Under the pieces are notes generated by a model that did no database searches, was not told the DNA's origin, and worked only from the letters and a program-made list of their open reading frames with translations. The position numbers and the translations under genes are program-made. Below, piece by piece: positions 55,611-62,416 of a stretch of DNA of 64,000 nt. This stretch comes from Styela clava (lineage: Eukaryota). Positions within the stretch are counted from its first letter, which is position 1, and each line of letters begins with the position of its first letter. Location: positions 10,912,001 to 10,976,000 of the forward strand of contig NC_135263.1 of NCBI RefSeq assembly GCF_964204865.1, given 5' to 3'.

Positions 55611-56588
55611 ATACATTTGTTTTTTTTTTCGGACATTTGTTAGTGTCGTAGTCCTGTTTCTAGAAATATTATTGCCTTTGTTCAAATACATAACCACATA
55701 AACTAAAAAAAGATTAATTGTAAATTGTAATATTTCTGTTCACTATGTTATGTACATATTGTACATTCATTTAATTTTCTTGACTTTTGCGGTAAATTTC
55801 TAAGTGAGAAATAACTGATTTATTTGTGTTTTCGTGCTCACGATGTTAATTTGTGACTTCATTGCTTAAAAATAAATACGTTTGATACTTGATAGCTTCT
55901 ATAAAATGGATGTAGCTTTTTATGCTGTTCTTGTTGTAAACTGCTTGTGGTTATTACATAAAATTTATTCTCAAATGTGAATCAGCGTTGTTGGTGTCGC
56001 TGCTTTCGAGGTCACTCCCGACTCCTGTCACACAATTAAAGTATTTTTTGTTGTTGGTTACATGTATGCCATATTTTTCGTAATCTACCTAATAAATTAT
56101 GATTGACTGAGGAAGTCCGATTTTGGTCAGGCAAAACATTACAGGAATACATTTGTGTTAGTGTGCTGTAGGGCTCTCGAATTGTATAGTTCTTATGTAT
56201 GCGTTGTAAACTTATGGTTATTGAATTTCCGGGAACCTCTTATATTCAATTTCGCACCAGGATTGTGGAACAAGCTGTAATGCGTTCATTATGTTCGTTT
56301 TCACACAAAACTGAAGAATTTATTTAGTTACCAGATGTGCGCTACGAAACTCATTTTCTGGGCGTTTTCATGGTTTCGTCTCACGGCCCATATCCGTGGT
56401 AAGGATCTACAAGTGTTTAATAATTTACTTATACATTTTTCAACAACGTCTTAGCATAACTTAACTAATAATAACTAAACAGGGCTATGGAAAGCCTGCC
56501 CAACTCAGCGCAAGGTCGAGCAGAAATAACTAATATTCATCCGCTCGCTAACAGCTGGTTTAATTCAATTGTTACGTCATGCAGAAGT

Positions 56589-57402
56589 TGTAGAGTTAAG
56601 AGGTTCTACAGGTCCTATTTCTGATTATTGGGCTGTCTTGTCAATCTACTTCCGTAGCTAACTCTCGACACAGTAGTAACGCACACATAAACACATCCAA
56701 CTTGTATGAAAGAACTTGTAATGAAAGTATATTTACAGTATATACAAGTCACAGTCCAGTAAAATTCCACAATCAGGTTAAAAGTTCCACAGTAGATAGA
56801 TAAATTTCCACAGCAAGTATAACGGCAGTGTAACACAGTGAATGTCAAAACTTGATGTCTGTATGTAAATGTATTGTATGTGTATTGTATGATGTGTTGT
56901 ATGATGTGGTTACAATATATTTGTGTCTCCAGCCCAACAACAGTACTTAAATTTAGCTACAAGACACAAAAACAATAAAAGAGTATAATTAGCCTTCGAC
57001 ATACAACTCAATTAGAACCTATATTACTAAATAACCCTAAACATCCTAACAATCCTAAATTAGCATAATCAAAACCCTACAATTTGCAACTCAATGCCGC
57101 AAAGTAATCGCAGCTACTAACAAAGAAATTCATGTGACCAGGCCTCATTGCACTGTCTCCCACACTAATAAATAGGACATTTAGTATAATACAATAAGAA
57201 AAACAAGGGCATGAATACAAATCAGCTGATATAAGAGAGTATTGCACCATCATTGCCAAGACTTCAAACTTTCTCTCGGTCAGTGACGCTTAATATAAAT
57301 AAACAAATAAATAAACGAGAGCAAGTCTGAACATGTTTATCGGGACCAGAATAACTAAAACTAATAGGTTAGTTCACGAAAGTTAAATTTCTGCCTGTAA
57401 CA
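56589..57402 (-). repeat. 3' LTR of the BEL/Pao element
   Basis: Direct repeat of 61310-62123; no difference found by eye and the small ORFs inside translate identically. Confidence 0.97.
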
Positions 57403-57540
57403 TTCCGGCCTCTAAGTAACTCTGGGAAAACAGAGTTAATTATAAATAATTCAAATTACAGGCAACAGGAAATTTCAACTTCAATATTAAACATAATAAA
57501 ACATGAAATGTTCACTAGTAATTAAAATTATTAAACAGCT

Positions 57541-60500
57541 TCAAGATGACACTGTAAATAGGTAACTGCATTGTACAATCACCATATTTGGAGCCCTTGA
57601 ACCATCTTGGCATAGAAACTCTTTTTCAGGAAGTTGAACCATCCACTTTTTCCATAAATCAATAGCTTTATCAGGTAACTGTTGATCCCAGGTAAAATTC
57701 TCTGCACATAATTGTTGAAGTAATCTCTTCATAGGTAACAAAAAAGGACCCAAAATACCAAGAGGATCAAAAATCTGTGCTTGCATCGCTAACAATCCAC
57801 GTCTTGTATATGGTTTTTGCTCAATATTGACTTCGAAACGAAATGCATCAGTAGATACATCCCACAGTAAACCCAATGCCTTCTGTGACATATTTTCTTC
57901 AAAATTAAAACTTATTGTAGTAGGTGATCTATCTGCTTCAGAGATAGTTTCCAAAACTTCAGGTTGAGAACTCAAAAACTTAGTAAGATGAAATCCCGAA
58001 CCATCAAGAAGACAGGACAAATCCTTTATACGATGAACTGCATCTTCCACGGTTGGCTCTGACCGAAGCAAATCATCGACGTAAAAATTTTCATTAATTG
58101 CACTTAAAGTTTCCTTGTCCATGTGATCTCGATTGTCGACAGCAACTTTCCTCAGGGCATAACAGCATACACTAGGAGCCCAAGAGCCACCAAAAATGTG
58201 AACATTCCAACGATACTCTGCAACTGGTTGATTGTAATCTCCATCTTGCCACCAAAGGAACCGCAGAGAATCTCTGTCTTCCGGTGCAACCAAAACTTGA
58301 TGATACATTGCAGAAATATCACCAATGATCAGAACTTTCTCTTCGCGACATCTTGTAAGGACACCAAACAAACTACTTGTTTCCGGTGGTCCGCTTAAAA
58401 CATTGTCATTCAATGATATATCGTTACACTTGGCAGACGCGTCAAAAACAATTCGAAATTTTCCTCCAACCCCATGGTGAGGAATATACCATGTATTTTT
58501 CTTGTGTATCAAATCTTGGTCTTCAATTTTACTAGCATATCCTTTAGAGATGTATTCATCCATCTTGGCTTTATATTTTTCATAATATCCAGAATCTTTG
58601 ACACAACGTCTCTGTAAATTCTCAAATCTTCTTTCAGCAACTTGCTTATTATCAGGCAACTCGATATCAGATGACCTCCATGGAATCTTGACTTGATATC
58701 TTCCATTCACTTTACAAATTGAATCATTCATGATCTTTAAAGCCTGTTTGTCTTCAATAGATGGTAAAGTGTCAAATCCACTGACATTAGAATCCTTTAA
58801 TTCATTCCGAAAAGCTTGCTCCATCTGAACATGCAATTCTTCATTATCCAAATGAATCCAATCAAGATGTTTTACACTTGGTTGATGAAATTTACCATCC
58901 GGCCCGAATAATGCCCATCCAAGACCAGTATGTACAGCAAATGGCTCTGAATTACTCCCACGTCGCATTCCATAACACGCATGAGCTTCAGGCACATCTA
59001 CACCAATCAGGACTTCAACTTTTGCATTCTTTGCATTTGGAAAATTGATATCTTTCAAGTATTCGTATTTCGCCATCGCACTATTAGACGGTATGTTGCA
59101 TTCCAAATCCGAGGGAAGATCGTCCAACACTCGAACTCCATGCATCTGAATAATCCTAGTTTCATTGAGTCCTTGAATATTCAGTGACACTTCAGGACTT
59201 GATTTATGTTCAATTTTTCCACCCAACGTCTTAATTACGAGTGGGTCGCTGTTGCCATGTAAACCAAGTTTCTTCATAAGCTCAGTTTTTATAATGCTAA
59301 CATTACTGCCATCATCAATGAATCCATATGTGTCGTATGATTGATTATCGGTTCCCCATACTCGCACAGGAACCACCTTTCTTCTTATAAAGGTGGCAGG
59401 TTTAACTTCAGTAGCACACAACTGAGTCGAAGTTACACCGGCCTCATTGGCGGTCGTAGCTCCGGCCTCATTAGACCTCACATCTTGAGGTGATTGCACA
59501 TCTGTACTACCATTTGGTTTCACTGAATCAGGCTTCTTATTAACGTGCAACAGTGTGTGATGTCTTCTATTGCAACCTGGTGCTCTACAATGATAATTTG
59601 ACTTGCACTGGCTTGCAAAATGATCTGGAAGCAAACAATTGAAACACAACTTGTTCCTGGAAACAATCTCGAACATCTCTTTGGCTTTCCTTTTCTTAAA
59701 TTCTTCACACCTCCACAACTGATGATCAGATTTGCACACAACGCACTCTCGTAGTGGTTTTCTCAACGTGGCATTACTCAACTTAGGATCAGCTGTGGGT
59801 GCTTTAGAAGATGACTCTTCAGAAATAAGAAATGATGACACACTGCGGTTGCCCCGCTGACTCGGACTGTCAACATATTTCTTTCCTTTATGTGTCTCAA
59901 GTGCAAGCTTACCAAATCCAGATCTATTCACATTTGAAACTGTCTCCATAAATGTAAGAAGAGTATCAAAATTGACAATATCTCCATTGGTGTACTTCTC
60001 ATTAGCAATGTGAGCAAATTTCCATAAATGTTGTATTGGAAATCTCTTTACAATCTTTCTTAATGTAGTTAAATCATCCAAACTACATCTGGCATCATAT
60101 TCCTTGAATACAATGAGGCAATTCCGTGCCTGGGTGACCAATTCATCCCATGCATTAACATCATTTGCCTTTATTGAGGGACCTTCAGTAAGTAATTGCA
60201 TATGTGCATCAATTATGAGATGCCTCTGACCATAATTTCGATGCAAAATACTTCGTGCCAGTTCATAACCTCTTTCTGCAGGTAAAGAACCACATGACAA
60301 TATTGCTTCTTTAGCAGAACCTTCACAATTGGAAATCAAACAATTCAATTTCTGAGCAACATCCAATTGACTCGAACCAATAAAAGTATTGAACTCTCGA
60401 ACAAACTCTGTATATTTAAGAATTTCTCCTTTAAATGTTGTCATCTTAATATGAGGGAACATCAAACCTTGCTTAATGATATTTGCTACATTCAGCATTC

Positions 60501-61254
60501 CTCCCTGTAAAGCTTGCGTCAGCTGCGCCATCGCATGAACAGTGTGATCCGGCATACCATATTCCATCTTAGCATGGCTTCTTATAGTACCCGGTGACTC
60601 AATCTTAATTTCATGGGCTGCTGACCTGTTTACAGGTTCAACATTCGGCACTTCAGTGGGAATCAAGCGAATGAGATGCTGATTTGTACTGGCATCAAAT
60701 CTATGATCATGCATAATATCACTCACCAAATTCTTCGCAGGTGATGGAATTTGATTCTCATTTGATATGAATGGAACGTTCGGATCCAACATACATCCTT
60801 TGTCATCCTTTGCCATAGGAGTAAAAATTTGCCGCAAGATTCTATTTGCTTTCTCTGGATCAAAGTCCGACACATTTGATGGTTTCATAGGAGGCGGAAG
60901 TGACGTATCAGCCACATCATCTTGACTTAATAACTTCAAATGATCAGTAATCGGAGTTGACTTGACAACTTTCTCAGAACTAGATTGAGCCTCAAATCCA
61001 TAAAATGTTGACCCGTCAACAACTGAACCTTGTCTTGAATGGCTAGCACTTGACAGCATATCATACTCAATTTGAGCTTCTTCAGCATCTGCTTCGGCTG
61101 CTAAAGTTTGAGAATCTAATTCAAGTTGCTTACGTTTCAACTCAGCTTGCTTCAGAATTTGTTGCTTTCTCAGATTTGCAAGTCGCAATCTCTTCTCTGC
61201 CTTTGCTCTTTCAGACATACATGACTTAGTAGTTGATCCAGAAACAGTTGACAT
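57541..61254 (-). CDS. BEL/Pao Gag-protease-reverse transcriptase polyprotein, truncated before RNase H and integrase
   Basis: Triple Cys-His knuckles CVVCKSDHQLWRC, CFNCLLPDHFASQC, CRAPGCNRRHHTLLH; protease FIDDGSNVS; RT motifs WYIPHH, RIVFDASA, GDISAMYHQV, FYVDD; Pao tether IFDPLG...WDQQLP. First ATG at 61254. Confidence 0.93.
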   Translation of the reverse strand: MSTVSGSTTKSCMSERAKAEKRLRLANLRKQQILKQAELKRKQLELDSQTLAAEADAEEAQIEYDMLSSASHSRQGSVVDGSTFYGFEAQSSSEKVVKSTPITDHLKLLSQDDVADTSLPPPMKPSNVSDFDPEKANRILRQIFTPMAKDDKGCMLDPNVPFISNENQIPSPAKNLVSDIMHDHRFDASTNQHLIRLIPTEVPNVEPVNRSAAHEIKIESPGTIRSHAKMEYGMPDHTVHAMAQLTQALQGGMLNVANIIKQGLMFPHIKMTTFKGEILKYTEFVREFNTFIGSSQLDVAQKLNCLISNCEGSAKEAILSCGSLPAERGYELARSILHRNYGQRHLIIDAHMQLLTEGPSIKANDVNAWDELVTQARNCLIVFKEYDARCSLDDLTTLRKIVKRFPIQHLWKFAHIANEKYTNGDIVNFDTLLTFMETVSNVNRSGFGKLALETHKGKKYVDSPSQRGNRSVSSFLISEESSSKAPTADPKLSNATLRKPLRECVVCKSDHQLWRCEEFKKRKAKEMFEIVSRNKLCFNCLLPDHFASQCKSNYHCRAPGCNRRHHTLLHVNKKPDSVKPNGSTDVQSPQDVRSNEAGATTANEAGVTSTQLCATEVKPATFIRRKVVPVRVWGTDNQSYDTYGFIDDGSNVSIIKTELMKKLGLHGNSDPLVIKTLGGKIEHKSSPEVSLNIQGLNETRIIQMHGVRVLDDLPSDLECNIPSNSAMAKYEYLKDINFPNAKNAKVEVLIGVDVPEAHACYGMRRGSNSEPFAVHTGLGWALFGPDGKFHQPSVKHLDWIHLDNEELHVQMEQAFRNELKDSNVSGFDTLPSIEDKQALKIMNDSICKVNGRYQVKIPWRSSDIELPDNKQVAERRFENLQRRCVKDSGYYEKYKAKMDEYISKGYASKIEDQDLIHKKNTWYIPHHGVGGKFRIVFDASAKCNDISLNDNVLSGPPETSSLFGVLTRCREEKVLIIGDISAMYHQVLVAPEDRDSLRFLWWQDGDYNQPVAEYRWNVHIFGGSWAPSVCCYALRKVAVDNRDHMDKETLSAINENFYVDDLLRSEPTVEDAVHRIKDLSCLLDGSGFHLTKFLSSQPEVLETISEADRSPTTISFNFEENMSQKALGLLWDVSTDAFRFEVNIEQKPYTRRGLLAMQAQIFDPLGILGPFLLPMKRLLQQLCAENFTWDQQLPDKAIDLWKKWMVQLPEKEFLCQDGSRAPNMVIVQCSYLFTVSS

Positions 61255-61309
61255 CTTCACTTGACTTTAAACTTTCAAGACAACAGTCGAGACATATATT
61301 GTAACTTAA

Positions 61310-62123
61310 TGTAGAGTTAAGAGGTTCTACAGGTCCTATTTCTGATTATTGGGCTGTCTTGTCAATCTACTTCCGTAGCTAACTCTCGACACAGTAGTAA
61401 CGCACACATAAACACATCCAACTTGTATGAAAGAACTTGTAATGAAAGTATATTTACAGTATATACAAGTCACAGTCCAGTAAAATTCCACAATCAGGTT
61501 AAAAGTTCCACAGTAGATAGATAAATTTCCACAGCAAGTATAACGGCAGTGTAACACAGTGAATGTCAAAACTTGATGTCTGTATGTAAATGTATTGTAT
61601 GTGTATTGTATGATGTGTTGTATGATGTGGTTACAATATATTTGTGTCTCCAGCCCAACAACAGTACTTAAATTTAGCTACAAGACACAAAAACAATAAA
61701 AGAGTATAATTAGCCTTCGACATACAACTCAATTAGAACCTATATTACTAAATAACCCTAAACATCCTAACAATCCTAAATTAGCATAATCAAAACCCTA
61801 CAATTTGCAACTCAATGCCGCAAAGTAATCGCAGCTACTAACAAAGAAATTCATGTGACCAGGCCTCATTGCACTGTCTCCCACACTAATAAATAGGACA
61901 TTTAGTATAATACAATAAGAAAAACAAGGGCATGAATACAAATCAGCTGATATAAGAGAGTATTGCACCATCATTGCCAAGACTTCAAACTTTCTCTCGG
62001 TCAGTGACGCTTAATATAAATAAACAAATAAATAAACGAGAGCAAGTCTGAACATGTTTATCGGGACCAGAATAACTAAAACTAATAGGTTAGTTCACGA
62101 AAGTTAAATTTCTGCCTGTAACA
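61310..62123 (-). repeat. 5' LTR of the BEL/Pao element
   Basis: Direct repeat of 56589-57402, upstream of gag on the minus strand. Confidence 0.97.
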
Positions 62124-62416
62124 GAAGTCATTGTTCAGTGCCGACAATGTAGAGAATATAGGACAGATCGTAGCACATATTTCTTGTAGTAAAAGCGTCT
62201 TTTCCGTAAAACGTGCAACTTTTGGACGTGGGAACAAGGCAATATTTGTTACTAAATTTTTAAGGAACATTTTAAAATCATTTTCAGGTAGTTACCTGAT
62301 GTGCGCTACGAAACTCATTTTCTAGGCGTTTTTCAGGGCCTCGGCTCGCGGCCTAATATGTTAATGAAGATTGCAACTGGATTGAAAATATTACGCGGAA
62401 ATAATAAGTGCGCACA

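Follow-up and report, generated by a model that had tools for sequence, protein, structure and literature searches.

Results

Structure of the element

The window, a 64,000-nucleotide stretch of Styela clava DNA (NC_135263.1, positions 10,912,001 to 10,976,000), contained a BEL/Pao retrotransposon on the minus strand. Two LTRs of 814 bp, the 5' LTR at 61310..62123 (-) and the 3' LTR at 56589..57402 (-), were 100% identical and ran TGTTACA...TCTACA; other copies and solo LTRs in the genome ended at the same base. The element was flanked by a 5-bp target-site duplication, ACTTC, with the upstream copy at 62124..62128 (-) and the downstream copy at 56584..56588 (-). A polypurine-type tract, AGAGGCCGGAA, abutted the 3' LTR at 57403..57413 (-); the motif GGGGCCGG(A/T)A followed by TGT recurred in the other families and in metagenomic relatives. 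One open frame (61260-57541) lay between the LTRs, with the ATG at 61254-61252 and about 1237 aa from it. Pfam searches of this truncated gag-pol frame (57541..61254 (-)) found the gag domain DUF1759 (PF03564, 1e-8) and Peptidase_A17 (PF05380, 6e-14), and full-length relatives of this family (family A) and of its sister family B additionally carried Integrase_H2C2 (PF17921) and DUF5641 (PF18701) downstream. The preliminary description, which had assigned the element to BEL/Pao, was therefore right on this point.

The frame stopped soon after the junction of an internal deletion of about 2 kb (57552..57553 (-)) that removed the rest of pol, including the integrase. Full-length copies aligned only to the last 150 nt before the 3' LTR, and the LTR spacing was 4.7 kb, compared with 6.3-6.7 kb in other copies of family A, whose open frames reached about 1900 aa. 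A second copy on another chromosome (contig C10) shared the junction, showing that the deleted form has been copied by retrotransposition, presumably with proteins supplied in trans.

Complementarity between the post-LTR site and the LTR

The 5' LTR ended ...CTCTACA at 61310 and was followed by the spacer TTAA (61306..61309 (-)), by GTTACAATATAT (61294..61305 (-)) and by GTCTC (61289..61293 (-)). No TGG was present in the first 30 nt after the LTR. GTTACAATATAT was the exact complement of ATATATTGTAAC inside the LTR (61630..61641 (-)), at LTR position 483-494 and 332 nt before the LTR end. Upstream of this segment were ACAA (61642-61645), GAGAC (61646..61650 (-)) and a TATA-like sequence, TAAATTTAAG (61667..61676 (-)), 35 nt before the paired segment; its role as a promoter is inferred. 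The same 12-mer was present in the 3' LTR at 56909..56920 (-). The letters and positions given in the preliminary description were thus confirmed, with one correction. Five of the seven other family A copies that kept the 5' junction had A instead of T at the 12th position (GTTACAATATAAGTCTC), indicating that the pairing typical of the family is 11 nt and that the window copy happens to have 12. The proposed extension of the pairing through GAGAC/GTCTC across the 4-nt bulge ACAA exists, and GTCTC was kept in all 8 copies that have the 5' junction, but a 5-bp second helix was not significant on its own (P about 0.26).

The LTR 12-mer was unchanged in 28 of 29 LTR copies, including copies of 77-87% identity. 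It and the stretch of more than 50 nt upstream, in which the TATA-like sequence lies, were nearly invariant, whereas the CA-rich stretch just downstream varied freely. A 12-nt exact complement between the first 20 nt after the LTR and the LTR occurred in 0.15-0.35% of shuffles. Foreign BEL/Pao LTRs never gave 12 nt or more (0 of 210 pairs), and other 20-nt windows of the same leader gave only 7 nt. Copies of this family with long open frames carried the same non-TGG site, showing that this copy did not lose a tRNA primer-binding site.

Covariation across BEL/Pao families of S. clava

The genome held many BEL/Pao families with long open frames. Ten of them (A, B, C, D, E, G, J, L, M and Q; 35-59% amino-acid identity) were compared after the LTR ends had been fixed without reference to the pairing, either from the ends of solo and 3' LTR matches or by aligning a 5' piece against a 3' piece of the same element. 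No TGG followed the LTR in any of the ten. In eight families, a site after the 5' LTR was the exact complement of a segment inside that family's own LTR, and this segment always lay 258-355 nt before the LTR end. In family A, GTTACAATATAT followed the spacer TTAA and paired with ATATATTGTAAC over 12 nt. In B, GTTGCTAAA followed TTT and paired with TTTAGCAAC over 9 nt; in C, ATTACAAATA followed CA and paired with TATTTGTAAT over 10 nt; in D (=F), TTTAAAGAATTTTT followed TCG and paired with its complement over 14 nt; in E (=N), ATAAATTGACTG followed TCGAA and paired with CAGTCAATTTAT over 12 nt; in G (=P, H), ATTTAAAAATAGT followed TC and paired with its complement over 13 nt; and in Q (=I), ATTAACAACG followed TTAA and paired with CGTTGTTAAT over 10 nt. 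In M, CGATAATAT followed a conserved spacer of 9-10 nt and paired with ATATTATCG over 9 nt. All the sequences differed, and each of the first nine pair positions showed 2-4 different Watson-Crick pair types. Family A and its sister B (59% amino-acid identity) paired at the homologous LTR place, ...GTTGGG(C/T)TGG...xxxAAC followed by a CA-rich tract, and differed by two compensatory double changes.

Own-LTR matches in the ten families, in the order given above, were 12, 9, 10, 14, 12, 13, 7, 6, 9 and 10 nt. By contrast, pairing each site with a foreign LTR gave a mean of 6.9 nt and a maximum of 11, with 9 nt or more in 20 and 10 nt or more in 8 of 210 pairs; six of ten families reaching 10 nt or more has a binomial tail of about 5e-7. 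Per-family shuffle P values were 0.0005-0.02 for six families (A, C, D, E, G and Q) and 0.04-0.09 for B and M. Shifted windows in the same leaders gave 5-9 nt, except in the ambiguous family J, where one gave 11. Duplex free energy against shuffled sites did not discriminate, as AT-rich perfect helices were no more stable than imperfect GC- and GU-rich ones, and exact-match length was used instead. Two clean Ty3/gypsy controls from the same genome gave best complements of 4 and 5 nt, and one of them had a canonical TGGCGACGAGGA site. Of the other Ty3/gypsy controls, two were confounded by tandem repeats, one had no LTR pair in the pieces examined and one was incomplete.

Families J, K, L and M were weaker. 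They shared a conserved spacer, AAGTT(T/A)TCGA, also given as T(A/T)(A/G)AAGTT(A/T)T, followed by only 6-9 nt (10 with one G-U pair in J) complementary to a homologous LTR site, xxxCG-GTA(T/A)G. A shared host primer is not excluded for that clade.

Leader folding and LTR layout

In thermodynamic folds of the R-U5 leader, the long-range helix had a pair probability of 0.7-0.99 in A, C, D, E and L071 (a metagenomic BEL/Pao contig, see below), with 0.9 for the paired LTR segment of the window copy, and of 0.5-0.9 in G. It was close to zero in B and M, showing that the 9-bp helix of these two families is not favoured in folding. AT-rich or TATA-like sequence lay 35-50 nt upstream of the LTR segment, and AATAAA lay 63-108 nt downstream of it in D, E and G, as expected if the segment is near the start of R. 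Smaller adjacent helices occurred in A (GAGAC/GTCTC), C (GAATCT/AGATTC) and Q (TGTAC/GTACA), but when a second helix was tested in all families, it was significant only in the metagenomic contig L118.

Metagenomic relatives from other hosts

A scan of metagenome contigs with a BEL/Pao profile gave 80 loci. Six had complete LTR pairs, of which one (L095) had non-canonical ends, and none showed TGG after the LTR. L071 had an 11-nt self-complement starting 3 nt after the LTR (P 0.002). L064 and L107 had 8 nt and 7 (+2) nt at offsets 0 and 3, while L084 and L125 had nothing convincing, and neither did L095. The clearest case was L118, which had the tract GGGGGGCCGGGA followed by TGTTGG, and a canonical TATAAAA box. 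Its LTR segment TGTTCCCCGGCATA, downstream of this box, was complementary to CCA-TA-TATGCCGGGGAACA over 14 bp, and the 11 nt just upstream of the segment (CTTGTCTTGGC) paired with GCCAAGACAAG, which lies 13 nt after the site (P<0.0005). A scan that did not rely on LTR ends found 11 nt or more only in L071 and L118 among about 35 metagenomic loci, and most metagenomic relatives showed no exact self-complement of 9 nt or more, indicating that the design exists beyond S. clava but is not universal. Contig starts showed no usable 5'-end signal and did not serve as proxies for transcripts.

Search for an alternative primer

No Rfam family or tRNA was found in the element. The complement of the site plus its spacer occurred in the genome only at element copies plus one further place, which is no more than the control pattern gave. 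The full set of host tRNAs, with its halves and fragments, could not be assembled.

Discussion

The element is best explained as a recently inserted, internally deleted BEL/Pao (Belpaoviridae) retrotransposon that probably starts minus-strand DNA synthesis with a piece of its own RNA instead of a tRNA, as the preliminary description had proposed. The complementarity, its position, its polarity and its covariation across families were observed directly; in the absence of RNA data, the transcription start, the cleavage and the actual use of the segment as primer are inferred. In the proposed mechanism, transcription starts in the 5' LTR shortly before or at ATATATTGTAAC (61641-61630). This 5'-proximal segment would fold back over R-U5, about 330 nt, and pair with GTTACAATATA(T), which lies 4 nt after the LTR. 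The RNase H of the element would cut the RNA just 3' of the duplex, after 61630, and the new 3'-OH would be extended through the TTAA spacer into U5 and R. The start of R lost from the template would be recovered from the 3' LTR (56909..56920) after the first strand transfer. Plus-strand strong-stop DNA would then copy the primer, rewriting the primer-binding site from the LTR in every cycle and keeping the two sequences complementary as families diverge. Exact, G-U-free matches that differ in every family are what is expected from such copying, although this point is also an inference.

The geometry matches self-priming as defined for Tf1 and Tf2 of Schizosaccharomyces pombe and Tj1 of S. japonicus (Ty3/gypsy, Tf1/sushi chromoviruses), in which there is no tRNA site and a 5' segment of the element's own mRNA, about 11 nt long, anneals to the site next to U5 and is cut to give the primer (PMC4600332). 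The typical pairing in family A is also 11 nt, the 3' end of the LTR segment faces U5, and the 2-5-nt spacer corresponds to the usual gap between U5 and the primer site. However, the Pfam profile here is that of BEL/Pao, not Ty3/gypsy, R+U5 is long (258-355 nt), and some members have a second helix upstream of the paired segment. TATA-like boxes lie 35-50 nt upstream of the segment, not about 30, and in L118 the segment starts about 18 nt downstream of the start predicted from the TATAAAA box. The primer is therefore probably 5'-proximal with a short tail, rather than nucleotides 1-11 as in Tf1.

Self-priming has been demonstrated for Tf1 and proposed for Tj1, the Tf1/sushi and Tcn1 lineages (Ty3/gypsy) and TAR (Ty1/copia) (PMC4600332, PMC6317226, PMC2864245). 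In plant and fungal Ty3/gypsy and Ty1/copia lineages it was inferred in the same way as here, from complementarity between the site and the LTR in the absence of a tRNA match (PMC6317226), showing that the trait occurs outside Tf1/sushi; none of these is BEL/Pao or from a metazoan BEL/Pao host. In half-tRNA priming of copia-type elements (1/2 tRNA-Met, 1/2 tRNA-Ile), the site is likewise non-canonical and does not begin with TGG (PMC6317226), but those sites are conserved across families because the host tRNA is shared, whereas here the site differs in every family and tracks the family's own LTR. ICTV describes Belpaoviridae (genus Semotivirus) as primed by host tRNA-Arg or tRNA-Gly and calls their replication poorly understood (PMC8742986). 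The window element shares with this description the DUF1759 gag, Peptidase_A17, TG...CA LTR ends, the 5-bp target duplication and the polypurine tract, but it has no tRNA-type site. The latter is a descriptive feature of the family, not a phylogenetic one, so membership stands. The main BEL/Pao survey (PMC3118150) and the Sinbad paper (PMC554778) do not discuss primer sites, and no report of self-priming in BEL/Pao was found in the full-text literature searched, which did not extend to older subscription papers.

Among the alternatives, a conserved long-range RNA structure used for packaging, dimerisation, cyclisation or translational control, with a primer of another kind, is unlikely but survives best. 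The helix is predicted to be stable, L118 has a 25-bp bipartite duplex, and the LTR segment is also present near the 3' end of the RNA. However, the downstream arm sits exactly where a primer-binding site sits, 2-5 nt after U5, with the polarity needed for priming into U5, and no other candidate site exists, there being no TGG in any of the ten families. Perfect Watson-Crick matches without G-U pairs are what copying from a primer produces, rather than what structural selection alone gives. Somewhat less likely is an LTR-derived primer acting in trans or from a different end, such as a short LTR transcript, a degradation product or an RNA 3' end formed at the U3/R border of the 3' LTR that anneals to the site on another genomic RNA. 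The 3' LTR carries the same segment with its upstream GAGAC, and the deleted derivative is presumably mobilised in trans anyway. Nevertheless, nothing indicates RNA 3'-end formation at the segment, AATAAA lies 63-108 nt downstream of it in D, E and G, and the cis fold-back is sufficient and has a precedent in Tf1 (PMC4600332). Priming at 61309-61289 by a host tRNA, tRNA half, tRNA fragment or other small RNA, with the LTR match being secondary, is very unlikely. Such priming would agree with the ICTV description, with the tRNA-Tyr 3'-end site of the insect BEL/Pao element Achilles (PMC4580426) and with the conserved post-LTR motif of families J-M, but there is no TGG, each family has a different, very AT-rich site that matches its own LTR, and no host locus matched the complement of the site beyond chance, within the limits of the incomplete tRNA set. 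Chance complementarity in AT-rich sequence is effectively refuted: although AT-rich 9-10-mers do turn up between unrelated sequences, matches of 12-14 nt were never seen in 210 foreign pairs, and the same position and polarity recurred in eight families and in two contigs from other hosts.

A broader reading, about as likely as not, is that self-priming is the normal, inherited mode of replication of a large clade of BEL/Pao elements in tunicates and other marine invertebrates, using a duplex of 5' leader and primer site that is often bipartite. Under this reading Belpaoviridae are not uniformly tRNA-primed and self-priming occurs in all three LTR-retrotransposon superfamilies, which would also explain why primer-binding sites are so rarely annotated in BEL/Pao surveys. 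Independent evolution of the trait, as the preliminary description considered possible, is plausible.

How reverse transcription is primed is a defining trait of retroelement lineages, and it constrains how they evolve and how hosts can restrict them, for instance through tRNA-fragment-based defence. BEL/Pao is the least studied LTR superfamily, and its replication is assumed to be tRNA-primed (PMC8742986). The covarying self-priming signature found here, in many young families that look active in a chordate relative, suggests that the mechanism arose or was kept more than once, and it gives annotators a simple rule for finding the primer site in such elements, namely to search the element's own LTR and not the tRNA set.

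Sequence features around the proposed primer segment and the 3' LTR

The CA-rich tract (CACATCATACAA...) located right after the proposed primer segment (window positions 61560-61629, and the same place in copies L002-L030) was the most length-variable part of the LTR among copies. By contrast, the 50 nt before it were almost invariant. The tract before the 3' LTR was strikingly conserved across BEL/Pao families and hosts (loci L033-L049 and L130-L141, and the metagenomic loci L064, L084, L107 and L118); it read GGGGCCGG(A/T)A or GGGGGCGG directly before TGT, and was not a plain purine run. A conserved motif, T(A/T)(A/G)AAGTT(A/T)TC(G/A)A, followed the 5' LTR in a BEL/Pao sub-clade comprising families J, K, L and M (L039, L040, L041 and L042) and the metagenomic locus L084. 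In J and K, this motif sat inside 23-nt tandem repeats of the leader. It could be a shared primer site or a structural element. When an abundant Ty3/gypsy family was inspected (L146, at G000:C2:24187101-24189801; pol frame of 1306 aa, dozens of copies), TGGCGAGCACACGCC was observed starting 12 nt after the apparent LTR end, rather than directly after it. A tandem cluster of more than 30 near-identical tRNA genes, spaced every 0.3-5 kb, was observed in the genome at G000:C2:15882721-15941977; further tRNA genes recurred about every 45 kb on many small unplaced contigs.

Genomic context and mobilisation of the deleted copy

A 44-nt direct repeat (95% identical) was observed on both sides of the element at window positions 56325-56368 and 62289-62332, respectively about 220 nt beyond the 3' LTR and about 165 nt before the 5' LTR; the element seems to have landed inside or between copies of another dispersed or tandem repeat. 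The family Q/I copy at L038/L141 (G000:C13:21733874-21743479) was embedded in a satellite with a period of about 72 nt (units such as GGTTGTATTAAGATG...) on both sides. The same internal deletion of about 2 kb of pol, with its junction at window position 57552, was present in two copies on different chromosomes, the second being located at G000:C10:4323603-4328756 (L006/L009); this is a non-autonomous derivative that has been mobilised.
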